Part shown: piece after piece, positions 1,919 through 52,110 of the stretch
Layout: the number at the start of each line of letters is the position of its first letter
Position numbering within the stretch: position 1 is the stretch's first letter
IMG/VR virus record: IMGVR_UViG_3300044591_002232
Coordinates: 124,001 to 188,000 of that record
Length of the DNA stretch: 64,000 bases
Direction: 5' to 3' (one strand)
The notes under the pieces: generated by a model
What the model was told of the DNA's origin: nothing
The model's input: the letters and a program-made list of their open reading frames with translations, nothing else
Database searches by the model: none
Translations under genes and position numbers: made by a program

Positions 1919-1953
1919 TTATAAACCCATTAACTTAAGGAGGATTTTCTAAA

Positions 1954-2574: not shown

Positions 2575-2575
2575 C

Positions 2576-2582
2576 CTAAATA
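2576..2582 (+). promoter_or_regulatory. T4-type late promoter CTAAATA (representative; others at 4281, 10480, 11761, 16211, 25762, 29204, 36817, 38662, 47241, 50250, 59186)
   Basis: (C/A)TAAATA recurs about 20-50 nt upstream of late genes; resembles the T4 gp55-dependent TATAAATA. Confidence 0.75.
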
Positions 2583-2604
2583 GGGTGATCTTAAAATTTA
2601 AATT

Positions 2605-7450: not shown

Positions 7451-7464
7451 GGAGATCACCACCC

Positions 7465-7869
7465 ATGGCTTCATTCACTGTCGAGATTCCCGATTATCTG
7501 CTTCCGGCCCTGGTGGCAGAGTTCAGTCTGGTGCAGGGCAAGGTGCCTGCGGCAACGCCTGAGGAGTATTTCAAGGCGAGCGTGGTGGAAATCATCCGCC
7601 AGCGTGCCGAGATCTACAAAGTTGGGCCGTACTTCGTCGGTGCGGTTGACCCGCAGTTCAATCAGGACGGGACACCGTATGGCTGGGCGCCGCCGCCTGA
7701 GCGGCCTGCGGCACTCACTGTCGGTCAGACATGGATTGATGGCAGCGGGCAGGAGTGGACGGTGGTGCAGGCCATTAACCCTGACGGCACGTTTGCTGCA
7801 GATGATCCTGAAACGCCCGAGCGCGAGTCTCTGGCCTGGGTGCAGACGGATGGAGGTGGCGACGGATGA
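7465..7869 (+). CDS. Hypothetical protein (GC-rich island)
   Basis: ORF with GAGGAG RBS upstream; overlaps next start. Confidence 0.6.
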   Translation: MASFTVEIPDYLLPALVAEFSLVQGKVPAATPEEYFKASVVEIIRQRAEIYKVGPYFVGAVDPQFNQDGTPYGWAPPPERPAALTVGQTWIDGSGQEWTVVQAINPDGTFAADDPETPERESLAWVQTDGGGDG

Positions 7870-8654
7870 CGTTGATATGGCGCCCAGGCTACATAACAAC
7901 ATTTGCTGATCCTGATGTTCAGTCGTATTTGACAAGGGTAGAGGAGGCCGATAATCAGGGATTGGAATACCCCGTGGCGGTGGCGATTGATGAGTTTATT
8001 AGGGGCTGCAAGGCTGATGGGATCTGGAGCGCTATCAAGGCGAGTTGCATCATGGCCGGCGCCCGCACGCTGGCCGGTGCGCTGGTGCCGCTGGTGGGGC
8101 CTGCGCCGACAAATATTGGTTTTGTGGCGGGGGATTACAACAGGAAGACGGGGTTGGTGGGGGGTGGCTCCGTTAAGGCGCTTAACAGCAATAGGGCTCG
8201 TAGTGCCGACCCGATCGACTCTTTCCACGCTTCCCTGTATTTAAGCACTACTGGCGGTAACGCTCTGTTTGGGTTGGCCAATGACGGCCAATTTGATCAA
8301 ATGCTTGCCGTTAATAGCAGCACGGGCACTTCTTTTAGGGGCAGAATTGTAGCTATTGACAACAGGGTAACTGGCTTTGTTGGGGCCAGCAATACTGCCG
8401 CTGCCTTAACGGCAAGAGCGAACGGCACCAATTCAACCAATACAGGCGCAATGTACGGGGCTTTTGCTAACTCAGGCAAATACTATGTATTTGCCCGAAA
8501 TACTGGAACAGGCGACGCTGATGGGGTCGTTAGTAGCGGCTCTCCTACTTTCAGCCGTCTCGCCTTCTACAGCATAGGCGAATCCCTAAACCTCGCCCTG
8601 CTGGATGCCCGCATCACCACCCTAATCAACAGATTCGCAGTCGTAATACCATGA
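7866..8654 (+). CDS. Hypothetical virion-like protein, paralog A
   Basis: Shares GCKADGIWSAIKASC..AGARTLAGALVPLVGPAPTN and RLAFYSIGESLNLALLDARITTLIN with 8651-9445. Confidence 0.7.
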   Translation: MTLIWRPGYITTFADPDVQSYLTRVEEADNQGLEYPVAVAIDEFIRGCKADGIWSAIKASCIMAGARTLAGALVPLVGPAPTNIGFVAGDYNRKTGLVGGGSVKALNSNRARSADPIDSFHASLYLSTTGGNALFGLANDGQFDQMLAVNSSTGTSFRGRIVAIDNRVTGFVGASNTAAALTARANGTNSTNTGAMYGAFANSGKYYVFARNTGTGDADGVVSSGSPTFSRLAFYSIGESLNLALLDARITTLINRFAVVIP

Positions 8655-9445
8655 GCCCAATTTACACTCCAGGAAAGTTAATACTTCGCCGGACGTATAT
8701 TGGCCTGGACGACCCTGACGCTGCGGCATACATCACAGCGGTCGAGATTGCAGATGGTCAGCCCTTGGAGATTGAGGTTCGGGTGGCAGTTCATTCGTTT
8801 GTAAAAGGCTGCAAGGCGGATGGCATCTGGAGCGCGATCAAAGCCTCCTGCATCCTTGCCGGCGCCCGCACACTGGCCGGTGCGTTGGTGCCGCTGGTGG
8901 GGCCTGCGCCGACGAATTTTAATTTCGTGGCTGGTGACTACAACCGCAAGACGGGGTTGGTGGGGAATGGGAGTACGAAGTATCTGGACAGCGGCAGGAA
9001 TAACAACGCTGATCCGCAAGATAGCAAGCATCTGGCAGTATTCAAATCAAGCAACGCAGGCAAGCTGGGGGGCCTCTTAGGCACTGCGTTGAACGCAAAT
9101 GGTACATCATGGATTTTTGAAGGTTTTAGTGGAGGCAGCGATACCTATCGAGTCAATACAAACCCTTCAATCATACTCTCCCTAGGATCTTATCCTGACA
9201 CGGGATTTATAGGCATTAACCGTTCGTCGTCGAGTAACTCAACGCGAAGGTATTCAGGGGCAACAATCTCTGATGCCAGCACCTCTCAAGCGCCATTAGC
9301 CGCAAATGCTCTGGTGTTTAGTGCCGCAGGCCAGCCAACCGACGCCCGCCTCGCCTTCTACTCCATCGGCGAATCCCTCAACCTCGCCCTGCTGGATGCC
9401 CGCATCACCACCCTAATCAACACGTTCGGAGCTGTTATCCCATGA
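8651..9445 (+). CDS. Hypothetical virion-like protein, paralog B
   Basis: Tandem paralog of 7866-8654; ATGA overlap. Confidence 0.7.
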   Translation: MSPIYTPGKLILRRTYIGLDDPDAAAYITAVEIADGQPLEIEVRVAVHSFVKGCKADGIWSAIKASCILAGARTLAGALVPLVGPAPTNFNFVAGDYNRKTGLVGNGSTKYLDSGRNNNADPQDSKHLAVFKSSNAGKLGGLLGTALNANGTSWIFEGFSGGSDTYRVNTNPSIILSLGSYPDTGFIGINRSSSSNSTRRYSGATISDASTSQAPLAANALVFSAAGQPTDARLAFYSIGESLNLALLDARITTLINTFGAVIP

Positions 9446-9515
9446 CCCATGTAATGAGCTATAGCAAACCAACCCCATTTTCCACTGCCTCTAACACTGC
9501 TGCGGAGGTAACACC

Positions 9516-10172
9516 ATGAGTTGGCTTATTACTGCCAAGCAGTACATTCCCGCCGTAATTGGCGAGCCATTCGGTGGCGGCTTCTTCGCTGGCTATATCA
9601 GCCACACTGCTGATGGCAACCCCACTCATGCGCTGATCGTGGCGCCTAGGGCTACTGGGGCGACGGGAACGGGTTATACGTTGACGACGCAGAGGCAGTG
9701 GAAGACAACAGACACAGCGACTGCAGGAGCGAACAGCGTATTTAATGGGGCAGCAAACACCGCTGCCATAGTGACGGCAGGCATCGCCGATCATCCTGCC
9801 GCGCAGTTCTGTGTTGGCTTAAGCATTGGTGGATTCACTGATTGGTACTTACCAGCAGTGGCTGAACTAAATATAGCTTATTTCAACCTCAAGCCAAACA
9901 CTAACTCAAACTTTACCGGTGCAGGATCTAACATATACGCCGTGCCAAGTCGCGGCAGTAATTTCACAGCAGGCAATCCGGCGCAAACGGCGCTAACAGC
10001 GTTTGTTAGCGGCGGGGAGCAATTCCAGTCGTCTGACCATTGGGCATCATCCGAAGCTAGTGCAACAAATGGCAATTACTATGGCTTCAACAGTGGGTTT
10101 CCAGGTAGCAGAGCAAAAACGACCTCAACCACGGCGGCGAACGTTCGCGCCTTCCGCCGCATCGCCCTCTAA
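9516..10172 (+). CDS. DUF1566/C-type-lectin-fold-like protein
   Basis: GGFTDWYLPAVAEL and C-terminal HWASSE...N...F..G....K....NVRAFRR pattern. Confidence 0.55.
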   Translation: MSWLITAKQYIPAVIGEPFGGGFFAGYISHTADGNPTHALIVAPRATGATGTGYTLTTQRQWKTTDTATAGANSVFNGAANTAAIVTAGIADHPAAQFCVGLSIGGFTDWYLPAVAELNIAYFNLKPNTNSNFTGAGSNIYAVPSRGSNFTAGNPAQTALTAFVSGGEQFQSSDHWASSEASATNGNYYGFNSGFPGSRAKTTSTTAANVRAFRRIAL

Positions 10173-17230: not shown

Positions 17231-18697
17231 ATGTCAGACGTAATTATTGAAAAGAAAAATGAGGTCTATAATCGCCTCATTTGCGAACCGCATGTTCTAT
17301 ACGAATTGGCTCCCTATTTTACCTTTGAGGTTCCGGGGGCCAAGTTTTCCCCGGCATATAAAAGAGGTGGTTGGAATGGCCAGATTAGTCTTTTGTCCAA
17401 GACCAATGGAGAAATCTATTGTGGTTTAATTGATAAGATTATTGAAAAAATTAAGGCTTATGGCTATTCTTATGAATTTAAAAATAGTAAGTTCTTTGGC
17501 TGTCCTTTTGAGGTTAATGAACAAATCACCAAAGAAGGTGTGGCCGAGTTTGTTAAGGCCCTAGGAAAAAAATCAGGTCTGGATCCTTATGATTATCAGA
17601 TTGGAACTGTTTATGAATGTTTAAGATACAATAGAAAAACAATTGTTTCGGCTACTTCTTCTGGTAAATCTTTTATGATTTACTGTATCGCAAGATATTA
17701 CTTGATGAAGGGTTTGAGAATTCTTTGTGTATTTCCTACCACATCACTGATACATCAGATGTATAATGACTGGATTGAGTATGGATATGATTCCGAATCA
17801 AACATTCATATGATTTATGCTGGGCAAAATCATAAGACAGATAAATCAGTAACCTACAGTACTTGGCAGGGGATTTACGAGAATCCAAAGTCCTTTTATG
17901 ATAATTATGACGTTATCATGGTTGATGAATGTCACGGAGTAAAGTCCAAGAGTCTCATCAATATTATGAAAAACTGCCATGAGATCAAATACCGTTTTGG
18001 TTTTACTGGTACTCTCAGTAACAATGATGATGGAAAAGCCTGTAATGAATTGACAATTACTGGTCTATTTGGTCCCCCTTATCGGGCCATTAATACCAAA
18101 GAATTGATTGAAAAGGGTAGAGCCGCAAAATTAGATATTAAGTGTTTGGTATTAAAGCACAAAGAACAAAAGTTTGCGAATTATGAAGAAGAAGTTCAGT
18201 TTCTGATTACTAGTGAGAAGAGAAATAATTACTTAAAAAATCTTGCATTGAATTTAAAAGGAAACACTCTTTTGATTTTCTCAAGAGTAGAGACTCATGG
18301 GGAAGTTCTTTACAATTTAATTAAGAATGCCGCAGATGATAAAAGAAAGATATTCTTTGTTCATGGTGGAGTAGAGGCAAAAGAAAGAGAAGAAGTTCGC
18401 GGTATTGTAGAGAGAGAAAATAATGCGATTATTGTTGCATCTTATGGAGTTTTTAGCACCGGAATTTCAATTAAGAATCTTAACAACATCATCTTTGGAT
18501 TTCCAAGTAAAGGAAAGATTAGAGTATTGCAAACAATTGGTCGAGGATTAAGAAAGTCAAAAACCAAAGATAAATGTATTCTTTATGATATTGCGGATGA
18601 TTGTGGGAAGAATTATACTTTAAACCACTTTATAGAAAGAGTGAAATTATACAATGAAGAAGAGTTTGAGTATGATATTTATAATATTACTCTATGA
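17231..18697 (+). CDS. uvsW: SF2 helicase UvsW
   Basis: Walker A-like SATSSGKS, VDECH, FGFTGT, LQTIGRGLRK. Confidence 0.93.
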   Translation: MSDVIIEKKNEVYNRLICEPHVLYELAPYFTFEVPGAKFSPAYKRGGWNGQISLLSKTNGEIYCGLIDKIIEKIKAYGYSYEFKNSKFFGCPFEVNEQITKEGVAEFVKALGKKSGLDPYDYQIGTVYECLRYNRKTIVSATSSGKSFMIYCIARYYLMKGLRILCVFPTTSLIHQMYNDWIEYGYDSESNIHMIYAGQNHKTDKSVTYSTWQGIYENPKSFYDNYDVIMVDECHGVKSKSLINIMKNCHEIKYRFGFTGTLSNNDDGKACNELTITGLFGPPYRAINTKELIEKGRAAKLDIKCLVLKHKEQKFANYEEEVQFLITSEKRNNYLKNLALNLKGNTLLIFSRVETHGEVLYNLIKNAADDKRKIFFVHGGVEAKEREEVRGIVERENNAIIVASYGVFSTGISIKNLNNIIFGFPSKGKIRVLQTIGRGLRKSKTKDKCILYDIADDCGKNYTLNHFIERVKLYNEEEFEYDIYNITL

Positions 18698-19342
18698 ACC
18701 CCACTCCTCGGCTTCTTTTTTTGTCATAAAGAAATGAATTCCTGAAGTACAATCAACCCTAATGTCGTCATTAAAGGCATCGGCATAAACAACTTCTCCT
18801 TCTTTATATTCTAATTTCTTTTCAGTATGTGTCGGGGAAAATCCAGAGCCTTCAAGAACCCTAACATGAGAAGCCCGACACTTGCGAGAAACTAGCGATG
18901 AAGTCCTCTTAGCATCTTCTGGAATTAGAAGTTTGATGACTCCAGTGGTTACCTTTTTATAGGCAATAAAAGAACCTTCTTCTGGAGGGAGTTGGAAATC
19001 AGGAAGTTTTGCATTTTCAAGATCGGCGTCCTCAAGATTGGCGCCCTCAAGATCGGCGCCCCCAAGATTGGCGCCCCCAAGAATGGCACCCACAAGATAG
19101 GCACCCCGAAGATTGGCGCCCACAAGATCGGCGCCCACAAGATTGGCACCCCAAAGATTGGCGCCCCGAAGATTGGCGCACCGAAGATCGGCTCCCTCAA
19201 GATTGGCGCCCACAAGATTGGCGTACTGAAGATTGGCGTCCCGAAGATTGGCGCCCACAAGAATGGCGTCCCGAAGATTGGCGTCCCAAAGATTGGCGCC
19301 CGGTTCAATAGTGTACTCTTTTCCGTTAATGGTTTTTTTCAT
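18692..19342 (-). CDS. Pentapeptide-repeat protein with C-terminal DUF5758-like domain
   Basis: About 20 (G/D)A(N/D)Lx repeats, then IAYKK..IKLLIP..RKCRAS..CTSGIHFF. Confidence 0.85.
   Translation of the reverse strand: MKKTINGKEYTIEPGANLWDANLRDAILVGANLRDANLQYANLVGANLEGADLRCANLRGANLWGANLVGADLVGANLRGAYLVGAILGGANLGGADLEGANLEDADLENAKLPDFQLPPEEGSFIAYKKVTTGVIKLLIPEDAKRTSSLVSRKCRASHVRVLEGSGFSPTHTEKKLEYKEGEVVYADAFNDDIRVDCTSGIHFFMTKKEAEEWGS
18992..19311 (-). repeat. 15-nt tandem repeat encoding pentapeptides
   Basis: Repeated aagat(t/c)ggcgccc-like units on + strand. Confidence 0.85.
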
Positions 19343-42063: not shown

Positions 42064-43065
42064 TTGGATTTTATTGATGAAACCTTTATTGAACGTGTTG
42101 CACCTAGACTACAAAACTTCAAGAAAGTAAAACCTAAACTTTATAATTTTCGATGTCCCTATTGTGGCGACTCTTCTAGATCTAAAAAAAAGGCCAGAGG
42201 ATATCTCTATCCGGTAGATAATAACACGAATTATAAGTGCCATAACTGCGGAATCAGTATTTCTCTTAATAACTTTTTAAAAGAAATAGACCCACCTCTT
42301 TATAAAGAGTTTACAATTGAAAAATATAAGGCTGGCTTTACTGGAAAGAATTTTGTTGTTGAGGCTCCTAAATTTGAAATATCAAAACCAAATTTTAGAG
42401 AAAGAGTTGGGCTTCCGGCTGCATCTAAAAATGATGTTGCAAGACAATATCTCTTAAAAAGAAAAATTGATCCGGATAAGTTTTATTATACCGAAAACTT
42501 CAAACAATGGATCAATGAAATTACTTATGAGCCAAATCTTTTAGAAGAGCCTAGAATAGTAATACCTTTGTACTATAATAAGAAATTAATAGGAGTACAA
42601 GGCCGAGCCCTTAATTCTTCTTCGGTAAAATACATCACAATCATGTTTGATGAACATTCTCCGAAGATTTATAATTATGATAATGTTAATAAAAAAGAAT
42701 TTGTTTATGTCCTAGAAGGACCTTTTGATTCTTACTTTATTAAAAATTCGGTCGCCATGTGCGGGGCCGATTTAGATCTAAAAAGTCTAAATATCTATTA
42801 CCCGGTATATGTTTATGACAACGAACCTCGCAACCAAGAAATACATTCTAGAATGTCAAAGGTAATCAAAGAGGGTTATTCAATAGTCATATGGCCAGAT
42901 ACAATAAAACAAAAAGACGTTAATGATGCAGTTCTTGCGGGAATTGATGTTGAGGACGTTTTGTCCAAAAATATTTACAAAGACCTAGAAGCACAACTTA
43001 AATTCAACTATTGGAAGAAAAATGAGCGAAGAAATCAAAGTCAAAAAACGCAATGGCACTATTGA
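42064..43065 (+). CDS. gp61: DNA primase
   Basis: FRCPYCGDS..KCHNCG zinc finger, VLEGPFDS, YDNEPRN, KDVND. Confidence 0.93.
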   Translation: MDFIDETFIERVAPRLQNFKKVKPKLYNFRCPYCGDSSRSKKKARGYLYPVDNNTNYKCHNCGISISLNNFLKEIDPPLYKEFTIEKYKAGFTGKNFVVEAPKFEISKPNFRERVGLPAASKNDVARQYLLKRKIDPDKFYYTENFKQWINEITYEPNLLEEPRIVIPLYYNKKLIGVQGRALNSSSVKYITIMFDEHSPKIYNYDNVNKKEFVYVLEGPFDSYFIKNSVAMCGADLDLKSLNIYYPVYVYDNEPRNQEIHSRMSKVIKEGYSIVIWPDTIKQKDVNDAVLAGIDVEDVLSKNIYKDLEAQLKFNYWKKNERRNQSQKTQWHY

Positions 43066-44074
43066 GCCATTGCAACTTTCTAAACTCCATGAAATGGTCG
43101 CCTGCGCCTGTGAGGGCCTTTCTGGAGTTTCAGTATCTCAGGTAGAAATGGCATCTGGGATTCAATTTTATGATGGTATTTCAACCAATGAAATTCAAGA
43201 AATCTTGATCAAGGCCGCATCTGATCTTATTTCTCTAGATAATCCTAATTATCAATACGTGGCCGCAAGACTTCTTCTGTTTTCAATTCGGAAGAAGATC
43301 TATGGTGGTCGAATTGATCTACCTCATCTGAGTGAGCACATTAAAAAGTGTGTAGACCTTGGTGTTTATGATGCCTCCATTTATGAGAACTATTCTGAAG
43401 AAGAACTAGATCTGGTCAATTCTTTTATTGACCATGACCGGGATCTTTTGTTTACTTATGCTGGCCTTCGGCAGGTAGTTGATAAGTATCTTGTGCAAGA
43501 CCGAGTGGATAATGTTCTTTATGAGACTCCTCAGTTTATGTACTTGGTGATTGCACTTACTGGTTTTGCAAAGTATCCTAAAGACAAAAGGATGTCTTAT
43601 GTAAAGCGTTATTATGATGCAATTAGCAAGCATAAAATTAATATTCCTACACCAATTCTTGCAGGAGTCAGAACCAAACTGAGGCAATATAGTAGTTGTG
43701 TTCTTGTTGATGTAGGAGATAGTCTTTCTAGTATCGAGGCTAGTGACGCTGCGGTTTTTAGATATGTTGCACAGCGAGCCGGTCTAGGTATTAATGCTGG
43801 GCGTATTAGGGGGATAAACAGTAAAATTCGTGGCGGTGAAGTTGTCCACACTGGAGTTATTCCTTATCTGAAAAAGTTTGAGGCCACTGTAAAAAGTTGT
43901 ACGCAAAATGGAATTCGCGGGGGTTGTTTTGATTCTGATTCTGAAGTTTTATTAATTGATAGTGTAGAAATTGATGGTAAAATTTATACACTCGATGATG
44001 AAATTGATGGGGTTAAAGTGTCTGAAATTATAAATAGTCATAACGGAAATAAAACCGTTATGTTATTGGAGTAA
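43022..44074 (+). CDS. nrdA: NrdA fragment 1 (301-aa extein with ATP cone plus 49-aa split-intein N-half)
   Basis: VKKRNG ATP cone, PTPILAG, SSCVL, TQNGIRGG then CFDSDSEV. Confidence 0.93.
   Translation: MSEEIKVKKRNGTIEPLQLSKLHEMVACACEGLSGVSVSQVEMASGIQFYDGISTNEIQEILIKAASDLISLDNPNYQYVAARLLLFSIRKKIYGGRIDLPHLSEHIKKCVDLGVYDASIYENYSEEELDLVNSFIDHDRDLLFTYAGLRQVVDKYLVQDRVDNVLYETPQFMYLVIALTGFAKYPKDKRMSYVKRYYDAISKHKINIPTPILAGVRTKLRQYSSCVLVDVGDSLSSIEASDAAVFRYVAQRAGLGINAGRIRGINSKIRGGEVVHTGVIPYLKKFEATVKSCTQNGIRGGCFDSDSEVLLIDSVEIDGKIYTLDDEIDGVKVSEIINSHNGNKTVMLLE
43925..44071 (+). mobile_element. Split intein 1, N-half (49 aa, atypically short)
   Basis: Begins with Cys (CFDSDSEVLL) exactly where NrdA homology stops. 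Confidence 0.75.
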
Positions 44075-44077
44075 AAA

Positions 44078-45073
44078 ATGGAAGACTTAATTTGGAACGA
44101 AGAAACGATTAGAAAAAGTAGATCTCCTTTTAGTATCTACTTTTATCTTAAAAAAACCAATGGAAATCAAGAGGAAGCTCAGAAACTTTACAGGGAATTT
44201 TTGGATAAAAATGTACCATTTAAAGAAAAACATAATAGACCCAATGCAAAAGAGTATTGGATGACCCGAGGATTTAGCGAAGAAGAAGCCATAATAAAGG
44301 TTAGGGAATTTCAATCTAAGCCTTTAGATTTGGAAATTTATATTGAGAAGTACGGAGAGGAGGAGGGTCTAGCTAAGTTTAATAAAAGAAAAGAAAATCT
44401 TCAAAATAGATTTGATGTTGAGATTAAAAATGTTCAACAAAAATTAAATTGCAGTTATGATGAGGCATATGAATATTGTTGCCAAAGAAGGAGAAGTTGT
44501 TCTCCTAGAACAGTAGATTATTGGTTAAATAGGGGCCATTCATTGGAGGATGCAAAAAAATTAGTATCAAAATTTTCAAAAGAAAGTAGTCCAAGAAGCA
44601 TATATTATTGGATCAGAATTGGTTATACCGAAGAAGAAGCAAAATTAAAAGTTTCTGAATATCAAGATAACAATTCTATAAGTGCCATAATGAAACGATA
44701 TGGGTGCGATAAATTTGAGGCTCTTGATATACAAGAATCTATACTTGAAAAAACCAAAAAAACTAATATTCAAAATAAAAAGAGTGTCGAAATTGGTGAT
44801 GAATATGCTTTTTTCGTTTATAAAAAGGAGGTTCAACGCGAAACAAAAAAAACTCTAAGATTGTATAAAGATACTTTTGTCAAAACTGATAAAAGTCAAA
44901 CTCTAGATCATATGTATAGCGTTTTTTGGGGTTTTTATAATGATGTTCCTCCAAAAATAATTGGATCTATTTATAATCTTAGATATGTTTCTCAATCAGA
45001 AAACTCAAAAAAACAATCTAATTGCTCAATAACACTCGAAACCTTATTAGAAAAGTACGAAAATGGAAATTAA
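44078..45073 (+). CDS. Free-standing HNH-like homing endonuclease inside fractured nrdA
   Basis: YW..RG.S.EEA repeats; LDHMYS..GF.N.VPP.IIGS..NL...N..K...CSIT. Confidence 0.7.
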   Translation: MEDLIWNEETIRKSRSPFSIYFYLKKTNGNQEEAQKLYREFLDKNVPFKEKHNRPNAKEYWMTRGFSEEEAIIKVREFQSKPLDLEIYIEKYGEEEGLAKFNKRKENLQNRFDVEIKNVQQKLNCSYDEAYEYCCQRRRSCSPRTVDYWLNRGHSLEDAKKLVSKFSKESSPRSIYYWIRIGYTEEEAKLKVSEYQDNNSISAIMKRYGCDKFEALDIQESILEKTKKTNIQNKKSVEIGDEYAFFVYKKEVQRETKKTLRLYKDTFVKTDKSQTLDHMYSVFWGFYNDVPPKIIGSIYNLRYVSQSENSKKQSNCSITLETLLEKYENGN

Positions 45074-45464
45074 AATTAATCTGGCAAAGAAAAGAATTTC
45101 AGATGTCTCCGTTGGAGATAGAGTCTATTGTTATAACGAATTTGATGATAAATTTTGTGTTGGAAATGTAACAAATTTATTTACTCCAACAATAAAAAAA
45201 GAATATCAGGAAGAAATTCTTATTGGTGGGGAGGCTGTTTATACTTCTAGTATTCATCCTTTTTATGATGGTCTTAATAAGAAATGGGTGGACTCACGGG
45301 AAATCGACAACATTTTTGGATTAGGGGTTTATGGTGATTATATTGACATTTTAAATGATCATAATTATAAATCTAATTGTGATAAAACTTTTTATGATTT
45401 TACTGTTGATAAATATCACAACTATTTTGTCGGCAAAAATGGAAAATTTACTTTAACTCATAAT
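45063..45464 (+). mobile_element. Split intein 1, C-half (134 aa)
   Basis: ISDVSVGDRV, block B TSSIHPF, block F YDFTVDKYHNYF, block G THN followed by Ser. Confidence 0.8.
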
Positions 45465-47219
45465 TCATCCACAGTATTTTTTCCTGTGTGGCACCAAGAA
45501 ATCGAGGATATTATTGTATTAAAAAATAATAAAGGCTCAGAAGATAATCGTGTTCGCAACCTTGATTATGCCATTCAGCTGAGTAAAATTTTTTATGAGC
45601 GATTTATTCAGGATGGAGAAATTACTCTGTTTTCACCTCATAATGTTCCAGGTCTTTATGAAAAATTTGGTTTAGATGGATTTGATGAACTTTATGTAAA
45701 GTATGAAAATGATCCTTCTATTCCAAAGAAAAAAGTAAAGGCCCAAGAGCTTATTATTGATATCTTGAAAGAGCGTGCAGAGACTGGTCGGATTTATCTT
45801 ATGAATATCGATCATTGTAATTCACATGGTCCTTTTAAGGATCAGATTACAATGAGTAACCTTTGTGTTGCTGGTGATACTAAAATTGAAATTGAAATTT
45901 TTGTTAAAGATATTAATGATTACAGGTGGGCAACAATTGACATAAAAAATTTAAATGATTTTATTAACAATCCAGAGTATGGGAATCTGAGAGTTCTTTC
46001 TTACGACCTTAATACTAGAACGAATGTAACCCAATCTATTACTGCATTTGCCGAAACTTTACCAAAAGCCCAGGTAATGAAACTTAGGCTCAGTAATAAT
46101 GTCGAAATCGTTGTTACCCCAGATCATAAGGTTTATACCAAAAATCGAAGCTATGTTATGGCCAAGGATCTGACTGCTTATGATGAATTAGTTTCACCAA
46201 AATTGAATGAATCTCTAAAAGTTGTTTCAACCGAATATCTTGAGGAAGAAATTCCTGTTTATGATATTACTGTAGAAGGAACTCATAATTTCTTTGCAAA
46301 TGGAGTTCTTGTTTCCAATTGTATGGAAATCCTTCTAAAAACTACCCCGATTGAACATATTGATGATGTAGATGGATCTATTGCTCTTTGTATTCTTTCT
46401 TGTGTTAATGTAGGTACAATTAAGTCTGATAAAGAGCTTGAAGAATGTTGTGATCTTTCTGTTAGATTCTTAGATGAGCTAATTGACCATCAGGAATATC
46501 CTGTTAAGGCCGCCGAATTAACAACCAAGGCTAGTCGTTCTCTAGGTATTGGTTATATTGGTCTGGCTCATTATCTTGCTAAATTGGGATTTAAATATTC
46601 TGATCCTGGTGCATGGGGAGCTGTCCATAAACTAACTGAAAGTTTTCAGTATTATCTTCTAAAATCATCCAATAATCTAGCAAAAGAAAAGGGTGCATGT
46701 GACAACTTTAAACACACTAAGTATTCTGATGGAATTCTTCCAATTGATACTTATAAGAAAGAAGTTGATGAAATTTGTGATGTAGAATATACTCATGACT
46801 GGGAACAACTTCGTCAGGATATTTTAGAACATGGTCTTCGCCATACTACACTCTCCTCTCAACCCCCAACGGAGAGTTGCCTTTTTTGGGAACATAAGAT
46901 TAAAACTTCTACCGGGGAAATGGACTTCCATCAAATTGCCGAATATGGTGGACTTGATTGGAGAGGGATTGAGGAAAATGATGCAATCGGCTGGTATGAC
47001 CTGAACAAGACTATTACAGTTGAAACTCAAGATGGATACAAAGAAGTTGATAAACTTTATTTCAATGGAAATAAAGAAGTTGCGACTATTACCTTTGAAA
47101 ATGGTAAAGTGATTAAGTGTACACCCAATCATAAGTTTTTGGTTCGACTAGAAAATGGTTCCACTATCTGGAAGCGAGTTTATGAATTGAATGAAGATGA
47201 CGAAGTAGTTGAGATTTAA
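45063..47219 (+). CDS. nrdA: NrdA fragment 2 (IntC1 - extein - cis intein - extein - IntN2)
   Basis: LTHN|SSTVFFPVWHQEIEDI; ERAETGRIY; SNL|C...SN|CMEIL; RSLGIGYIGLA; QPPTES|CLF. Confidence 0.93.
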   Translation: MEIKINLAKKRISDVSVGDRVYCYNEFDDKFCVGNVTNLFTPTIKKEYQEEILIGGEAVYTSSIHPFYDGLNKKWVDSREIDNIFGLGVYGDYIDILNDHNYKSNCDKTFYDFTVDKYHNYFVGKNGKFTLTHNSSTVFFPVWHQEIEDIIVLKNNKGSEDNRVRNLDYAIQLSKIFYERFIQDGEITLFSPHNVPGLYEKFGLDGFDELYVKYENDPSIPKKKVKAQELIIDILKERAETGRIYLMNIDHCNSHGPFKDQITMSNLCVAGDTKIEIEIFVKDINDYRWATIDIKNLNDFINNPEYGNLRVLSYDLNTRTNVTQSITAFAETLPKAQVMKLRLSNNVEIVVTPDHKVYTKNRSYVMAKDLTAYDELVSPKLNESLKVVSTEYLEEEIPVYDITVEGTHNFFANGVLVSNCMEILLKTTPIEHIDDVDGSIALCILSCVNVGTIKSDKELEECCDLSVRFLDELIDHQEYPVKAAELTTKASRSLGIGYIGLAHYLAKLGFKYSDPGAWGAVHKLTESFQYYLLKSSNNLAKEKGACDNFKHTKYSDGILPIDTYKKEVDEICDVEYTHDWEQLRQDILEHGLRHTTLSSQPPTESCLFWEHKIKTSTGEMDFHQIAEYGGLDWRGIEENDAIGWYDLNKTITVETQDGYKEVDKLYFNGNKEVATITFENGKVIKCTPNHKFLVRLENGSTIWKRVYELNEDDEVVEI
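45864..46319 (+). mobile_element. Cis mini-intein (152 aa) at the NrdA active-site SNL|CxE
   Basis: CVAGDT, VTPDHKVY, YDITVEGTHNFFANGVLVSN followed by Cys. Confidence 0.9.
46878..47216 (+). mobile_element. Split intein 2, N-half (113 aa)
   Basis: CLFWEHKI, CTPNHKF, ELNEDDEV then stop. Confidence 0.88.
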
Positions 47220-47270
47220 TGCGTTGATGCCTTCACTTTACTAAATAATAATAGTTTAGTAAAGGCATCA

Positions 47271-48347
47271 ATGAAGACAAAACTAGTTACTTTAATGAAA
47301 ACCAGATTTAACATTTTAACCCCGCACGAACTCTTAACAGAATTGAAACAAATCGGAAAAATTGACTATAGGTCATTAAGAAAGCCATTTGAAGAAACCC
47401 CGCCAGAGAGATTTGATCTTGAGGTTATTAAAAAATATGTTAGTTATGTTTTTCTATACCCAAATAAAAGAAAACTTCAATATGAACCAGAATATTGGAT
47501 GTACAGAAGGAACCTTTCTTATAATGAAGCTGTTGAGCTTATTAAACAAAATAAAATAGATAATGGTCAAACAAAAGAGGCTTTTATAAAAAGATATGGA
47601 GAAGAAAAAGGATTAGAAATGTATGAAAAATTTAGATTAACCAGCGCATATCCGTCTTCCGATGAATGGTTCAAAGAAAAATATGGGGAAACATGGGAAG
47701 AAGAAAAAGCATATGCTATGAAAAGAAAATCTAAACGAACTGTAGAATATTGGACCCATCGTGGATATAGTTTAGAAGAAGCTAAAATTGAAGTTAGTAA
47801 ATATCAAAGATCAACCTCTGGTGTTCATAGAGAATATTATAGACAAAGAGGATATAGTGAAGATGAAATTGCTGTTATTTTTAATGAAATAGATAAGAAA
47901 AAACCCAATCATAAAAGAAACACCAATTATCTCCGTGAAAAATACCCCGATACTTGGCAAGAGATTTATCTTGAAGTATCTGAAAAATATAGAAAAAGAA
48001 TGGAGGAGTTAGGAGTATGGATTGAAAATGACATTGCTGACGACTTTAAAAAATATAAAACGCTTGTAATTAGATATACTAATCAGAGTTTATTATTTTA
48101 TGGAGAATTGATTGAGAATTTAGAATTGAGATCTAAAGACTTTCAATTAGATCACAAATATTCAATTAAAATGGGATTTATAAATAATATTCCAGCTGAA
48201 ATAATTGGATCAATAGTAAATTTAGAGATACTTCCAGCGAGTATTAATGGCTCAAAACAACATAAATGTTCTATTACTAAAACCCACCTTTTAACCGAGT
48301 ACAAAAAATTTAAGGAGACACATGAAAGTAAAAACGATTCAATTTGA
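47271..48347 (+). CDS. Second free-standing HNH-like homing endonuclease inside nrdA
   Basis: YW..RGYSLEEA repeats; LDHKYS..GF.NNIPAEIIGS..NL...N.SK..KCSIT; late promoter 47241. Confidence 0.72.
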   Translation: MKTKLVTLMKTRFNILTPHELLTELKQIGKIDYRSLRKPFEETPPERFDLEVIKKYVSYVFLYPNKRKLQYEPEYWMYRRNLSYNEAVELIKQNKIDNGQTKEAFIKRYGEEKGLEMYEKFRLTSAYPSSDEWFKEKYGETWEEEKAYAMKRKSKRTVEYWTHRGYSLEEAKIEVSKYQRSTSGVHREYYRQRGYSEDEIAVIFNEIDKKKPNHKRNTNYLREKYPDTWQEIYLEVSEKYRKRMEELGVWIENDIADDFKKYKTLVIRYTNQSLLFYGELIENLELRSKDFQLDHKYSIKMGFINNIPAEIIGSIVNLEILPASINGSKQHKCSITKTHLLTEYKKFKETHESKNDSI

Positions 48348-48426
48348 AGGAGAAATTCTTCCAACTTACGACATTGAAGTTCCAGAAGTTCATCATTACA
48401 ACTGTGAAGGGCTAGTATCTCACAAC
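48322..48426 (+). mobile_element. Split intein 2, C-half (35 aa)
   Basis: Blocks F and G ending SHN with +1 Ser. Confidence 0.88.
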
Positions 48427-48861
48427 AGTTCGGTTTCGTGTAATGCAACAAACGGAGTAGAACCTCCTAGAGATTATCTTTCCATTAAACAATCTAAAAA
48501 GGGAACTCTCAAACAAATTGTACCCCAGTATAATAAACTAAAGAACAATTATACACTTCTTTGGGACATGCCTTCAAATGAAGGATATATTAATTGTGTT
48601 TCTGTTATGCAAAAGTTCTTTGACCAGGGAATTAGTGTAAATGGTAGCTATAATCCCCAGAATTATCCAAATAATGAAGTGCCAATCAGTGTTATAGTCA
48701 ATGACGTTCTTTCACTATACAAATATGGTGCAAAGACTGCATATTATCATAACACATATGATGGCAAAACTGATGATGTTTCTGCCGAAGAAATTAAAAA
48801 TAATGATTTAATTTCCGAAATCTTATCATCAGAAGAAGAATGTATCGCATGTAACGTTTAA
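48322..48861 (+). CDS. nrdA: NrdA fragment 3 (35-aa IntC2 plus 144-aa C-terminal extein)
   Basis: YDIEVPEVHHYNCEGLVSHN|SSVSCNATNGVEPPR, DQGIS, KTAYY, C-terminal CIAC redox pair. Confidence 0.92.
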   Translation: MKVKTIQFEGEILPTYDIEVPEVHHYNCEGLVSHNSSVSCNATNGVEPPRDYLSIKQSKKGTLKQIVPQYNKLKNNYTLLWDMPSNEGYINCVSVMQKFFDQGISVNGSYNPQNYPNNEVPISVIVNDVLSLYKYGAKTAYYHNTYDGKTDDVSAEEIKNNDLISEILSSEEECIACNV

Positions 48862-48873
48862 TCTAGGAAATTT

Positions 48874-50022
48874 ATGTCTAAAGTAAAAGGAATGACAGTT
48901 TTTAATACAGAAGAAATTAACACTAAAAAGCAAAAAATGTTTTTTAGTGCTCCATTGGGGATCCAACGATATGATGAGTATAAATACCCAATTTTTGAAA
49001 AACTCACACAACAGCAGCTCAGTTTCTTTTGGCGTCCAGAAGAAATAAATCTTCAAAAAGATAGGGCAGATTATCAGACTCTTCGCTCAGAGCAAAAACA
49101 CATTTATACTTCTAATTTAAAGTATCAGATTATGCTTGATTCTGTTCAGGGTCGAGGAACTTCAATTGCTTTTCTGCCATATTGTTCTTTACCAGAACTT
49201 GAATCATGTATAGAAGCCTGGGGATTCATGGAAATGATCCATAGTCGATCATATACTTATATTATAAAAAATATCTATGCTAACCCATCTGAAATATTTG
49301 ATACTATTATTGGTGATGAGAGAATTTTAGAAAGAGCCAAGAGTATTACTGATAATTACGATGAATATATTCAACATGCTCAACAATACTCTTCTTCAAA
49401 TCTTTGGCAATTTAATAATGAGGGTGTAGATTTAGGTAAAAATGAGCTTTATGAGGTAAAGAGAAAACTTTATCGAGCCATAATGGCAGTGAATATCCTA
49501 GAAGGAATTCGCTTTTATGTTTCCTTTGCTTGTTCTTTTGCCTTTGGTGAGCTGAAGTTAATGGAAGGAAGTGCGAAGATTATTTCGCTAATTAGCCGCG
49601 ATGAAGCGTGTCATTTAAATATAACCCAGAATATTCTTTCAAAATGGAAATCAGGCGACGATCCTGATATGATTAAAATTGCAAAAGAAGAAGAGCAATG
49701 GGTTTATAAGACATTTGAAGAAGCAGTTAATCAAGAAAAAAGATGGGCCGAATATATTTTTAAAGACGGCTCACTTATAGGGTTAAACTCCGCTCTTCTT
49801 TGTCAATATGTTGAGTGGGTTTGTAATAGACGTATGAAGGCTATTGGTTTTAAACCTCTTTATGATATTCCGGCCAATAATAATCCTCTTCCATGGACGG
49901 ATAACTGGCTCAGTTCAAAGGGGGTGCAGGTTGCACCTCAAGAGGTCCAGATTACTTCTTATCTAGTAGGGGGTCTTAATCAGGACATTAAACCAGATAG
50001 TTTCGCCAACTTCAAACTTTGA
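48874..50022 (+). CDS. nrdB: Ribonucleotide reductase class Ia beta subunit
   Basis: FFWRPEEI, DSVQGRG, EMIHSRSY, LEGIRFYVSF, RDEACH. Confidence 0.96.
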   Translation: MSKVKGMTVFNTEEINTKKQKMFFSAPLGIQRYDEYKYPIFEKLTQQQLSFFWRPEEINLQKDRADYQTLRSEQKHIYTSNLKYQIMLDSVQGRGTSIAFLPYCSLPELESCIEAWGFMEMIHSRSYTYIIKNIYANPSEIFDTIIGDERILERAKSITDNYDEYIQHAQQYSSSNLWQFNNEGVDLGKNELYEVKRKLYRAIMAVNILEGIRFYVSFACSFAFGELKLMEGSAKIISLISRDEACHLNITQNILSKWKSGDDPDMIKIAKEEEQWVYKTFEEAVNQEKRWAEYIFKDGSLIGLNSALLCQYVEWVCNRRMKAIGFKPLYDIPANNNPLPWTDNWLSSKGVQVAPQEVQITSYLVGGLNQDIKPDSFANFKL

Positions 50023-50036
50023 CTAAATATATTAGT

Positions 50037-50120
50037 CTGTTAGTACGACAATACTCCACAGACAGGATTAGGTGCTCATATGAGCACCTTTTTTTATAAA
50101 TATTAATGTCGTACTAACAG
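50037..50120 (+). promoter_or_regulatory. Nested inverted-repeat/terminator/late-promoter cassette
   Basis: ctgttagtacgaca (50037-50050) and tgtcgtactaacag (50107-50120) flank palindrome aggtgctcatatgagcacct and TATAAATA. Confidence 0.65.
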
Positions 50121-50127
50121 AATATAA

Positions 50128-50223
50128 ATGACTAAATTAAATCCGAGAATTTATACATATAAAATTACTTTATATCAGAGAAATAGAGGAATAGATAAAT
50201 CAAATCGAATAAGAATTAAATAA
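50128..50223 (+). pseudogene. Truncated GIY-YIG-type endonuclease N-terminus
   Basis: MTKLNPRIYTYKIT then unrelated sequence; same upstream cassette as the intact gene at 52963. Confidence 0.55.
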
Positions 50224-50283
50224 CCCCGGCCCCTTTAAGGGTCTTTTTACTAAATACTAAAAGAAAACCTATTTCTAAAAAAT

Positions 50284-51561
50284 ATGTCACTTTATAGTCT
50301 AACAGAAGCCTATTCGGAAATCTACGATCACCGAAAGGTCGAAGATCTGTTTGATAATCTTCGATTTGTTGATTACATGCAAGATGGAGATATTGAACAA
50401 GTAGTCGAAGAACTCGTTTGGGAATTCCGTGATTATGGTAATACCTTAGACGAATCATTTGAAATGCTCTCATTTGCCTCGACCGATGAGGTAATTTGTG
50501 AGTCTTACGATGAGCTTATTGAAGATATTCTCACCGAGGCAACTGTTACCAAAGGATCCCAGCGTTCTCAATATGCTGGCTCTGCTCAGGATAGAGTGAC
50601 TTCTGGTCGTGGTGATATTATGGCCCAACAATCTGCTGCTAAAAAACTAGCCAGAAAGTCTGGTAAGGCGGTTGCGGCTGGCCTGGATGCAGAATCAAAG
50701 CAAAGAATGTCAGCTCGCGCCGCACGAGTTGGTAATGCTATTTCTAAGGTTAAATCCAAACTCAGTGGTCCTATTTCTTCTGTAAAACAGTCTATCTCAG
50801 GTTCTGCTGGTGGTCTAGGCCGTGCCACTAAGGCTATGGGTGGTAAAGTAGTAGAAAAAGGTAAGGCCATGTTAAAATCGATTCTTCGTCGTGGTGGTAA
50901 GGCCATCTATGGTGCTGGAAAGGCAATTGAGGGTAGTGGTAGAGCGGCATCCGCTGCTCCAGCAACCACTAGAACCGCCAAGGTTGGTCGCACCACTGTT
51001 ACCACTACCACAGAGCCTGGTGGTAGTAAAAGGCAGGCTGTTGGTCGGGCTGTTCGTAAAGTAGGTGTTGCGCTTCAAAGAAAGGCGGGTAAGAAAGATG
51101 AGCCCAAAATGAGTCGGGCTGATTATGAGTCTCGTAAGTCCGAAAGAACTACATCTGCCAAGAAAGAAGTGGGTGATGCATTTGCAAAGCCAAAACCAAT
51201 GCTTGCTCTTCCAGCAAAAACCTCTGGCCAGCCTGCTGTCCAAAGAACAGTTTCGGCTCGTAAACAAGAGGCCGCCAAGAAAATTGCCAAGGCCGCAGAA
51301 GGTTCAACTGCTAGGGGAACTCGATTTTCTGGTCCAGGGGCTCGTCTTTCTAGCCAAAGAACCAAGACTGGTTATAAAGAGCGTCTTGCCAAGTTTGCAT
51401 CTCAACTATCCGAGCAAGATTATAACACTCTAGTTGATTATATTCTTGAGGACATGATTTCAGAAGGTTATGCTTCTGATGTACTAGAAGCTCTTGATCT
51501 ATTTGAATCATTGACCGAAGATAGTGTAATTGATATTGCACTTGATTATTTTAACGACTGA
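50284..51561 (+). CDS. Late protein: acidic termini with long K/A/R/G-rich basic core
   Basis: ORF track; C-terminal YILEDMISEGYA module; late promoter 50250. Confidence 0.7.
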   Translation: MSLYSLTEAYSEIYDHRKVEDLFDNLRFVDYMQDGDIEQVVEELVWEFRDYGNTLDESFEMLSFASTDEVICESYDELIEDILTEATVTKGSQRSQYAGSAQDRVTSGRGDIMAQQSAAKKLARKSGKAVAAGLDAESKQRMSARAARVGNAISKVKSKLSGPISSVKQSISGSAGGLGRATKAMGGKVVEKGKAMLKSILRRGGKAIYGAGKAIEGSGRAASAAPATTRTAKVGRTTVTTTTEPGGSKRQAVGRAVRKVGVALQRKAGKKDEPKMSRADYESRKSERTTSAKKEVGDAFAKPKPMLALPAKTSGQPAVQRTVSARKQEAAKKIAKAAEGSTARGTRFSGPGARLSSQRTKTGYKERLAKFASQLSEQDYNTLVDYILEDMISEGYASDVLEALDLFESLTEDSVIDIALDYFND

Positions 51562-51713
51562 TGATCCACTCTACTGATGTTTATGCTCTTAAGGCCAAAT
51601 TAAACGGCCTTAAAAATAAACTCCAAAGAGAACAAAATCCACAAAACGAAAAGAACCTCGCTGATGATTACCTCAATGAGGTTCTTTTCCTTGTGGATTC
51701 TCTCCTGAAATAA
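51561..51713 (+). CDS. Small conserved hypothetical (50 aa)
   Basis: MIHSTDVYALKAKLNGLKNKL...LADDYLNEVLFLV; TGATG-coupled. Confidence 0.5.
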   Translation: MIHSTDVYALKAKLNGLKNKLQREQNPQNEKNLADDYLNEVLFLVDSLLK

Positions 51714-52110
51714 CCAGCCCATAAATTCTTTCTACTTCGCTAGAATAAAATTTTCCTTCAATATTAGTATTATAATAGGCCTCATCTAATAAAACATTTC
51801 TTTTAAACTGCTCGTATGTCTCATAATAGGACATACTTTTTTTATGAGGGCATAAATACAAAATTTCTCTTTTGAACTTGTTTTCACCTAAAGATTTAAC
51901 GTCTTCTTTTAGTTGGTCACAACTACCGAAATATTTTCTCCAATCGCTTTCTTTGGTTTGCCGTCTTCCAGTCTTTGCGTTTTTTCTTCTTTCCCAGAAA
52001 TGTTTTTTACCAATGTACTTCATCCCGTTTTCTATGTTTGTTATTAAGTAAACAAATCCCTCATACTTTTTATCGACCTCATCAAATTCTTGACCGTTAA
52101 AATACCACAC
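51673..52110 (-). CDS. GIY-YIG family nuclease, conserved in T4-like phages
   Basis: GFVYLITN..NGMKYIGKK, WRKYFGS, FKREIL. Confidence 0.8.
   Translation of the reverse strand: MWYFNGQEFDEVDKKYEGFVYLITNIENGMKYIGKKHFWERRKNAKTGRRQTKESDWRKYFGSCDQLKEDVKSLGENKFKREILYLCPHKKSMSYYETYEQFKRNVLLDEAYYNTNIEGKFYSSEVERIYGLVISGENPQGKEPH

Follow-up and report, generated by a model that had tools for sequence, protein, structure and literature searches.

Why should the gene of a phage ribonucleotide reductase be broken at two points, with a gene for the same kind of endonuclease lying in each break? The question is raised by the class Ia nrdA locus (43022-48861) of a 64,000-nucleotide stretch of IMG/VR virus record IMGVR_UViG_3300044591_002232, hereafter the window, in which the locus is formed by five consecutive plus-strand open reading frames (ORFs). 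The original prediction placed a related pair of HNH-like endonucleases, here ORF-A and ORF-B, at the two fracture points, and proposed that one endonuclease family specialises in invading inteins and converting them to split form, having done so twice at different intein positions. Having analysed the locus, its relatives and contigs from lake water, we consider it likely that it holds two independent composite homing elements, each made of a split intein plus an HNH-like endonuclease and each faithful to its own nrdA site.

The gene contains three inteins at three sites, two of which have the form N-terminal half (IntN), free-standing endonuclease gene, C-terminal half (IntC); the nrdA of this lake phage lies in three pieces because two different split inteins each house one of two related, selfish endonuclease genes. 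ORFs 1, 3 and 5 cover in turn positions 1-79, 79-392 and 392-523 of the Ribonuc_red_lgC profile and are class Ia NrdA according to NCBIfam. Extein 1 (43022-43924; this and all features of the locus given below are on the plus strand) comprises the ATP-cone, the all-alpha domain and the start of the barrel (Pfam ATP-cone, Ribonuc_red_lgN and Ribonuc_red_lgC) and ends in ...IRGG, its end at 43924 coinciding with the junction of an intein-free allele in lake contigs. It is followed by IntN1 (43925-44074 with its TAA stop), an N half of 49 amino acids (aa) with Cys1 and block A only, assigned from sequence and an alignment of the three inteins, then by ORF-A (44078-45073, 331 aa) and by IntC1 (45063-45464), a C half of 134 aa with block B TSSIHPF, blocks F and G and a terminal ...THN ahead of Ser+1. 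The assignment of IntC1 is based on the Pfam PT-HINT match over aa 10-126, on an intein-C profile built here, on the alignment and on a predicted complex. Extein 2a (45465-45863; Ribonuc_red_lgC, NCBIfam class Ia NrdA) and extein 2b (46320-46877; Pfam and NCBIfam matches, ending in ...PTES) flank a contiguous mini-intein of 152 aa (45864-46319; TIGR01445, TIGR01443), which is inserted at the thiyl-radical cysteine site, ...MSNL^C(MEI), and contains no endonuclease. The second fracture opens with IntN2 (46878-47219 with its stop), a canonical N half of 113 aa with Cys1 and block B TPNHKF (Pfam Intein_splicing over aa 660-716; E 5e-49 with a profile built here), continues with ORF-B (47271-48347, 358 aa) and closes with IntC2 (48322-48426), a canonical C half of 35 aa that ends in ...VSHN before Ser+1 and is recognised by Pfam and by a profile built here. 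Extein 3 with its stop codon (48427-48861) supplies the C-terminal part, namely the Ribonuc_red_lgC positions covered by ORF 5.

All three inteins retain their full set of splicing residues (Cys1, block B T..H, terminal (H/S)N and Ser/Cys +1), and the two fractured inteins are indeed broken at different positions, as had been proposed: intein 1 after 49 residues, before block B, an atypical break between blocks A and B which leaves B, F and G in IntC1, and intein 2 after 113 residues, at the canonical site. When the inteins are aligned using computationally joined IntN and IntC sequences, intein 1 shares about 22% identity with the other two, BLAST being not significant, and no kinship of intein 1 and intein 2 is detectable; a distant kinship (E 5e-8) links intein 2 to the mini-intein. 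Since intein 1 and intein 2 are not detectably related, at least two separate unions of the endonuclease lineage with an intein are needed. The predicted IntN1-IntC1 complex has a score of 0.89, versus 0.01 for the best control, with runs agreeing in at least 86% of contacts and a partner pLDDT (predicted local distance difference test) of at least 81; in the benchmark, 51 of 78 solved complexes attain the mark set for this score, as do 2 of 108 mismatched pairs. The model supports trans-splicing that would restore the host protein NrdA, and may reflect likeness rather than give proof, because split-intein complexes have already been solved.

ORF-A and ORF-B are, as judged from their sequences, paralogues of one nuclease family. 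BLASTP aligns them at E 1e-28 with 33% identity across 281 residues, and in tblastn searches of the 64-kb window each matches only the other. The shared motifs that had suggested the kinship are found in both proteins: three repeats of the type YW..RG(Y/F/H)S.EEA..V..(F/Y)Q, with starts at aa 60, 148 and 176 (ORF-A) or aa 75, 160 and 189 (ORF-B), and the C-terminal block LDH.YS..GF...IIGS..NL...N..K..CSIT. A second type of repeat, ..FI.KYGEE.G...F.KF, is also common to the two, and the nuclease domain extends over about aa 243-331 of ORF-A (nucleotides (nt) 44804-45070) and about aa 254-349 of ORF-B (nt 48030-48317).

The junctions are equally as described, ORF-A being in frame with IntN1 (TAA 44072-44074, AAA, ATG 44078) and both endonuclease ORFs overlapping the downstream IntC ORF, by 11 nt in ORF-A (next start 45063) and by 26 nt in ORF-B (next start 48322). 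ORF-B is likewise in frame with the IntN2 ORF, 17 codons downstream. Such frame relations, together with the existence of in-frame HNH inteins (bioRxiv 10.1101/2025.01.02.630785), would suit decaying classical inteins, in which a single ORF with an in-frame HNH domain was later cut in three by stops or frameshifts, an origin that we regard as highly improbable. At the orthologous loci L024, L088 and L089 the endonuclease is out of frame with IntN, and we therefore read the in-frame relation as a coincidence; for the same reason we rejected the idea that the TAA AAA junction points to read-through or to an earlier fusion. The nested in-frame arrangement of a classical intein is also absent from the locus, where stops (44072-44074 and 47217-47219) precede separate start codons and each IntC ORF is read in the +1 frame with respect to its own endonuclease. 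Moreover, a strong AAGGAG ribosome-binding site for IntC2 lies inside the 3' end of ORF-B (none is evident upstream of IntC1), intein 1 is broken where nested endonuclease domains do not occur (PMC2677866), and most relatives of the nuclease are free-standing genes.

A further argument against decay from a single ORF is that ORF-B appears to have its own hairpin-regulated start. This hairpin (47222-47273) is formed by the 51 nt that separate IntN2 from ORF-B. Within its 3' arm the Shine-Dalgarno-like AAGG and the ATG are base-paired, its loop reads CTAAATAATA, and it folds with -24.1 kcal/mol (z -6.7), a stability matched by 0 of 200 shuffles. Comparable hairpins are found in most of the orthologues folded, with stem sequences that differ around a common ATGCC...GGCAT core, and the loops of L010 and L021 contain an exact TATAAATA. 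Upstream of ORF-A (44029-44067) the signals are arranged differently: TATAAATA, the T4-type late-promoter consensus, is found at 44029-44036, 42 nt upstream of the ATG, and is followed by a modest hairpin (44033-44067; -12.1 kcal/mol, z -2.8), weaker than that of ORF-B, and by GGAG 6 nt ahead of the start codon. The TATAAATA pattern has 12 matches in the window versus 5.4 expected, which is too weak alone and is taken as a lead only; TATAAATA and the hairpin upstream of ORF-A may have a regulatory function. The hairpins, the overlaps and the internal AAGGAG match those of the fractured genes of Dassa et al. (PMC2677866) and of mobE as studied by Gibb and Edgell, and by this analogy the endonucleases would be expressed late in infection.

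The class of the nuclease was addressed from conservation and predicted structure. In ORF-B numbering, D294, H295, S298, G302, N326 and K329 are invariant among 41 full-length and 43 domain-only relatives, whereas N317 is invariant in the former alignment and at least 90% conserved in the latter; the catalytic D-H, N and N persist in relatives with as little as about 25% identity. AlphaFold models ORF-B (pLDDT 89.7) as a series of helical hairpins that leads into a strand-strand-helix core, and the nuclease domain folded alone (pLDDT 93.5) is laid out as strand 291-295, strand 318-322 and helix 323-329. In this predicted model D294-H295 end strand 1, N317 begins strand 2, and N326 and K329 are within the helix, and it is because the invariant residues fall in this way at the catalytic positions of HNH enzymes that we favour an HNH reading. 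Comparison with 48,161 solved chains placed HNH enzymes at the top, namely 4h9d (Z 5.3, root-mean-square deviation (rmsd) 3.2 Å, 65 aligned) and 5h0o (Z 4.8) for the full-length model, and 5h0o as the best match of the domain model, with a Z of only 4.5 (rmsd 3.8 Å, 75 aligned). Whole-model Foldseek searches against the PDB gave helical-repeat noise only, and the domain was then folded alone; its own Foldseek rows, none of them significant (E 1.5 or worse), are mostly HNH nucleases (I-HmuI, ColE7, Cas9 HNH, ScoMcrA). Neighbours in the Atlas combine the same nuclease domain with NUMOD3, HTH or DUF7487 modules. Altogether, we take the C-terminal domain to be most probably a divergent HNH nuclease (beta-beta-alpha-metal, H-N-N type) whose structural scores are weak.

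This nuclease family is unnamed in Pfam and 'uncharacterized' in UniProt and BFVD. ORF-A and ORF-B match no family in Pfam or NCBIfam, with no HNH match at E up to 0.1, the PHROGs that they do match (5104 and 23051) are labelled 'unknown function', and neither sequence nor profile searches of the PDB sequences returned an HNH match. Other identities were considered and rejected. A match to influenza B PA in the PDB (E 0.017-0.1, 37 residues) was judged to be due to chance, given its different fold class and near-threshold scores. A Vsr-like or EDxHD nuclease (I-Bth0305I family) is at odds with the lack of any DUF559/Vsr match and with a model core of two strands and a helix, which is not the restriction-enzyme fold. 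The DHHRN type (Endo VII motif, F-CphI) is defined by D-H-x-H plus conserved Arg and Asn, without a central Asn (PMC6083498), and the sequence here is D-H-K-Y/F with a conserved central Asn317.

What, then, is the unit that moves? Logan contigs of four lake runs were aligned to 43000-48900 (5,901 bases), and joints were found from 43925 to 45489 in two runs, in one of them on a 4.3-kb contig of depth 15, from 46878 to 48433 in two runs, and from 45862 to 46319 in one run (X19), the last skipping exactly the 456 nt of the mini-intein. Upon translation these joints are exact in-frame intein-free alleles (...IRGG|SSTIFFQIWHQ..., ...PTES|SSVSCNATNG... and ...MSNL|CMEILL...), and empty and occupied alleles are both present in lake-water runs, in two cases within a single run. 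The exact intein-free alleles in the lake contigs imply that what is present or absent as a whole is the intein plus its endonuclease. Joints that remove the endonuclease alone were not seen in the contigs of the four runs, which cannot show rare variants. Just 3' of empty sites 1 and 2, 6 of 24 and 4 of 6 bases are not those of the occupied allele, as compared with a divergence of 2-5% in the flanks, and the changes at site 2 are synonymous ones in serine codons; in this single comparison, the differences would fit an endonuclease target at that place, to which occupied alleles are immune. Two more joints were recorded in the same contigs, either of which may come from a divergent strain or be an assembly artefact: one at 46505-46716 (X5), which skips 210 nt in extein 2b, and one at 45920-47539 (X14, depth 2.6), which leads from the mini-intein to the interior of ORF-B with 9 other letters between.

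The IMG/VR relatives of the site-2 element provide additional states. In L090-L092 (L090:2780-2990) the endonuclease is reduced to its final 26 or so codons, in which the IntC ribosome-binding site lies, and in L087 (2780-2920) the endonuclease is gone and a 33-nt spacer separates the halves of an intein that is still split. As far as the sequences can tell, these are natural decay stages of the element, that is, loss states and not states prior to invasion.

IMG/VR was scanned with the family alignment, which yielded 80 loci holding the nuclease domain, and the neighbours were classified by BLAST to the NrdA pieces of the window, by Pfam and by intein-half profiles built here. The domain lies between intein halves in 22 of the 80, a figure biased towards ORF-B relatives: 17 loci are at nrdA site 2, two at nrdA site 1, one in a gp41-type helicase and two in a topoisomerase II large subunit, one of the latter with a frameshifted endonuclease. 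These intein-resident loci represent 16 of 65 distinct full-length proteins. The other 58 loci are found between sbcD and sbcC without an intein (6), as in-frame fusions within long ORFs (8) or in other contexts without adjacent intein halves (44). A maximum-likelihood tree of 68 members, obtained in a quick search and having several long branches, joins the split-intein residents of nrdA site 1, nrdA site 2 and gp41 in one group (SH-aLRT, the Shimodaira-Hasegawa-like approximate likelihood ratio test, 96); the sbcD/sbcC group adjoins it and the topoisomerase case is placed elsewhere. The profile survey that the original prediction called for thus bears out a specialisation in inteins for one subclade, but not for the family as a whole, because its wider membership resides mostly outside inteins.

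Within the intein-resident group, each endonuclease lineage stays with its own nrdA site, in diverse phages. Site 1 is occupied by ORF-A relatives in L020, L024, L124, L125 and L126 (down to 32% identity); among the more distant relatives, P0082, P0085 and P0087, which are 35-40% identical to ORF-A, are at this site. Site 2 holds ORF-B relatives in the 17 IMG/VR loci, in the phages phiKp_21 and WX1 and in L127 (down to about 28% identity); among the more distant relatives, P0057, which is 33% identical to ORF-B and lies on a 311-kb contig, is at this site. In the Klebsiella jumbo phage phiKp_21 the order at site 2 is nrdA-IntN, homologue, IntC-nrdA, and Campylobacter phage vB_CjeM_WX1 has three annotated nrdA pieces with the homologue ahead of the last. 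Occupancy is independent among sites: L020 and L024 have site 1 only, L012 has site 2 only, and L013 and L017 have site 2 plus the mini-intein. Outside inteins, cultured T4-like phages (Jiaodavirus and Gelderlandvirus) carry the domain between the tail sheath and tail tube genes.

The same relatives allowed us to follow the repeats. Within the nuclease family, YW..RG.S.EEA repeats are limited to the nrdA and sbcD/sbcC groups, and several of them are found in P0111 (L128:1775-2791, locus 847-3284), a Vsr-like DUF559/MTES_1575 endonuclease in a split uvsX/recA intein, which points to a DNA-binding module common to two nuclease classes that both live in split inteins. It could even be argued that an endonuclease lineage defined by these repeats, and not by its nuclease, is adapted to inteins and repeatedly makes split inteins at canonical and atypical breaks; we hold this broader proposal to be rather unlikely, yet if true it would make the lineage one of the chief origins of split inteins in nature, among them pairs in one protein that are naturally orthogonal.

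How the endonucleases came to lie in the inteins is a related question. Invasion of an intein and its conversion to split form is an origin that we infer following the model of Dassa et al. 2009. Of what had been claimed in this respect, the separate unions with unrelated inteins stand, whereas the conversion step finds no counterpart in the data, as no contiguous relative of either intein lacking the endonuclease was found in IMG/VR, only whole units are absent in the lake contigs, and the intein of L087 is still split. A stronger version of the same idea would have the intein as the target, the endonucleases recognising intein DNA, inserting into contiguous mini-inteins resident in nrdA and splitting them, as in the model proposed in PMC2677866. 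Insertion points that differ within the intein fold of two unrelated inteins, a resident subclade that spans three intein sites, and the Vsr-like endonuclease with the same repeats in the split uvsX intein would all agree with it. However, IMG/VR yielded no close relative of intein 1 or intein 2 that is contiguous and free of endonuclease, but only distant contiguous inteins in other contexts; the contigs of the four lake runs have whole-unit absences only; the endonuclease-less relative is still split and others keep a remnant, which are loss states; and the nearest relatives outside inteins lie between sbcD and sbcC. We thus consider intein DNA an unlikely target, and favour composite elements in which intein and endonuclease move together.

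A last alternative is that the elements are immobile relics, with endonucleases that are inactive or recruited to another role (e.g. regulation) and with intein halves acting as docking tails of a non-covalent NrdA. There is a precedent in phage Aeh1, whose NrdA-a assembles with NrdA-b via tails without splicing (PMC3045599), and the parallel divergence of endonuclease and exteins would be compatible with it. Even so, we find this very hard to reconcile with splicing nucleophiles and blocks intact in all three inteins, with endonuclease D-H, N and N residues that are invariant in such distant relatives, and with empty and occupied alleles both in lake-water runs, twice within one run. Returning to the two composite homing elements, several observations weigh against them. 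The empty alleles come from related strains (95-98% flank identity) and not from the same genome, and rare alleles that lack the endonuclease alone may be invisible in contigs. The endonuclease, the intein halves and the exteins diverge roughly in parallel, a pattern that fits vertical residence as well as frequent homing, and implies that much of the history of the elements was vertical. What speaks for an HNH nuclease is a motif, a predicted fold and Z scores that are weak, with no HNH model of Pfam or NCBIfam matching, and the start-codon hairpin of ORF-A is less clear than that of ORF-B.

With these reservations, the elements may be envisaged to work as follows. Each endonuclease, which would bind DNA with its helical repeats and cleave it with an HNH-type (beta-beta-alpha-metal) domain at the C terminus, would cut the intein-free nrdA allele of a co-infecting relative close to its own insertion site, and in repair templated by the occupied allele the empty site would gain the complete IntN-endonuclease-IntC unit (homing). 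The cost to the host would be low: the three NrdA pieces would be made separately, the halves of each split intein would pair (IntN1-IntC1, IntN2-IntC2), and a single NrdA chain would be rebuilt by two splicing reactions in trans and one in cis, so that the endonuclease would supply mobility and trans-splicing would supply harmlessness to the host. RNA structure over the ribosome-binding site and the start codon would repress translation of the endonuclease, a repression that late transcripts probably relieve, as has been demonstrated for the mobE gene of Aeh1. Translation of IntC would depend on a ribosome-binding site within the 3' end of the endonuclease gene, which would explain the ORF overlaps. 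The two elements would have arisen separately, a free-standing member of the lineage probably having landed at the canonical insertion point of one intein and, on another occasion, near the N terminus of another.

The window itself, as its genes suggest, comes from a T4-like myovirus of lake water, probably a cyanophage. This freshwater assignment is made because T4-type genes are encoded (portal, major head protein, gp43 polymerase, gp41 helicase, gp61 primase, gp46-like SbcC subunit and NrdB), because the closest cultured relatives are Synechococcus phages B3 and B23, whose polymerases are 66% identical to that of the window, and because the DNA is present in at least 16 lake-water metagenome runs of different studies; it also occurs in IMG/VR contigs up to 161 kb. 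Megablast, a near-identity search, of the nrdA locus against phage nucleotide records gave no match. Immediately downstream of the locus is the gene of the partner subunit, nrdB (48874-50022, plus strand; PHROG 86, E 2.6e-158), and about 1.6 kb further downstream, on the minus strand, a SegE-type GIY-YIG free-standing endonuclease ORF (51673-52110; Pfam PF19835, E 2e-38), a second kind of mobile endonuclease near nrdA. Elsewhere, positions 7001-10000 form an island of high guanine-cytosine (GC) content (0.53-0.60 versus about 0.36), in which three of four ORFs lack a Pfam match and the fourth has a weak sub-threshold Lcl_C match, and which may be acquired DNA or contain unusual structural genes; a pentapeptide-repeat protein with a DUF5758 domain (18692-19342, minus strand) is found within the phage replication module.

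Some of the relatives deserve a description of their own. The nuclease domain is in frame within seven ORFs of 840-1646 aa (L037:2330-5617, L042:572-5512, L046:1278-4826, L048:2681-5395, L049:2420-5617, L053:2864-5386 and L031:12-3248), most of which have a ROS/MucR-type zinc finger ahead of it. In five of the seven it is flanked by a cytidylyltransferase-like part on the N side and a ligase-like (KxDG) part on the C side; L031 is without the cytidylyltransferase-like part and ends inside an intein cut into the ligase-like part, and in L048 only the zinc finger was seen. No intein blocks were seen at the borders of the domain in these ORFs, which could be endonucleases fused into a host protein without a splicing element, or multi-domain enzymes. 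Other mobile elements were noted at the loci surveyed: a large intein in the nrdB of L087 (3406-5334), a LAGLIDADG match in the dUTPase gene of L125 (178-1545), a canonical HNH_3/NUMOD4 endonuclease at another nrdA break in L127 (1021-1506), and, in Campylobacter phage CP21 (L123, record 43283-50591), the family member CP21_075 among annotated tail sheath pieces, beside three other annotated homing endonucleases.

The closest known systems are the fractured genes of Dassa et al. 2009 (PMC2677866), who described 26 such loci with hairpins and overlaps and proposed the invasion model. The present locus has the features of a fractured gene, namely consecutive ORFs for parts of NrdA, IntN and IntC ends with splicing residues, endonucleases overlapping IntC and a hairpin at the start of ORF-B, and it resembles those loci in gene order, in a host gene of DNA metabolism (nrdA included), in a hairpin over the endonuclease start, there often with TATAAATA, and in an overlap of the endonuclease 3' end with the IntC ORF, which in that set amounts to 6-69 bp. 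The 2009 set also included one atypically split intein with a long IntC, in a terminase, and one locus without an endonuclease. It differs in that its seven nrdA loci are all fractured at the thiyl-radical cysteine, whereas in the window this site holds the contiguous mini-intein and two other nrdA sites are fractured, and in that only GIY-YIG and Vsr-like endonucleases were found there, whereas here the breaks hold two paralogues of an HNH-like family. Dassa et al. wrote that LAGLIDADG and HNH enzymes 'could' fracture genes, and in the later surveys consulted HNH appears solely as a domain in frame with an intein, the type found in split inteins being Vsr-like (bioRxiv 10.1101/2025.01.02.630785); the present family addresses this gap, since an HNH-type family would fracture genes via split inteins as well. 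A 2013 survey noted that the nrdA of a Campylobacter phage is 'interrupted by two putative inteins', and left the intervening ORFs unanalysed.

Aeromonas phage Aeh1, whose nrdA is split by mobE (Friedrich 2007; Gibb and Edgell 2007, 2009; Crona 2011, PMC3045599), also has an HNH-type free-standing endonuclease inside nrdA, with a ribosome-binding site sequestered in a hairpin and an overlap with the downstream nrdA piece. However, no intein is present there and the NrdA pieces join non-covalently via short tails. Intein 1 in turn resembles atypically split inteins, such as the terminase intein of Dassa et al. 2009 or the AceL-TerL type, in which IntN has about 16-25 aa, by its short IntN without block B and its long IntC with blocks B, F and G, and differs from them by the 49 aa of IntN1, by its host gene nrdA and by the endonuclease gene still at the break. 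The AceL-TerL type is named in PMC11766414.

As for the nuclease, HNH homing endonucleases such as I-HmuI (PDB 1u3e) and phage HNH enzymes (GVE2, 5h0o; Geobacter, 4h9d) share with ORF-A and ORF-B the D-H that ends strand 1, the central Asn and the helix Asn, and also a separate DNA-binding part of small repeated modules; unlike these, the ORF-A/ORF-B domain has about 22 residues and two short helices between the His and the central Asn, no zinc-binding cysteine pairs and no Pfam HNH match, and its DNA-binding repeats (YW..RG.S.EEA and KYG types) are not NUMODs. The collaborative homing of F-CphI, a DHHRN enzyme of cyanophage S-PM2 (PMC6083498), is similar in that a free-standing beta-beta-alpha-metal endonuclease mobilises a neighbouring splicing element devoid of endonuclease, but here Tyr or Phe is found two residues after the His, the central Asn is conserved, and the partner is an intein and not a group I intron.

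In respect to these systems, the fractured-gene arrangement as such is already known. New are the family to which the endonucleases belong, the presence in one gene of two fractures and a third intein, an atypical break whose endonuclease is still in place, the repeat module common to two nuclease classes, which is a candidate new modular DNA-binding unit comparable to NUMODs, and the population evidence for empty sites. With the empty site, the full element, the endonuclease remnant and the bare split intein all found, the stages document a proposed route to split inteins; and a protein that requires two splicing reactions in trans and one in cis would imply a set of three inteins orthogonal to one another, among them one whose N half is short, which are parts sought by protein engineers.

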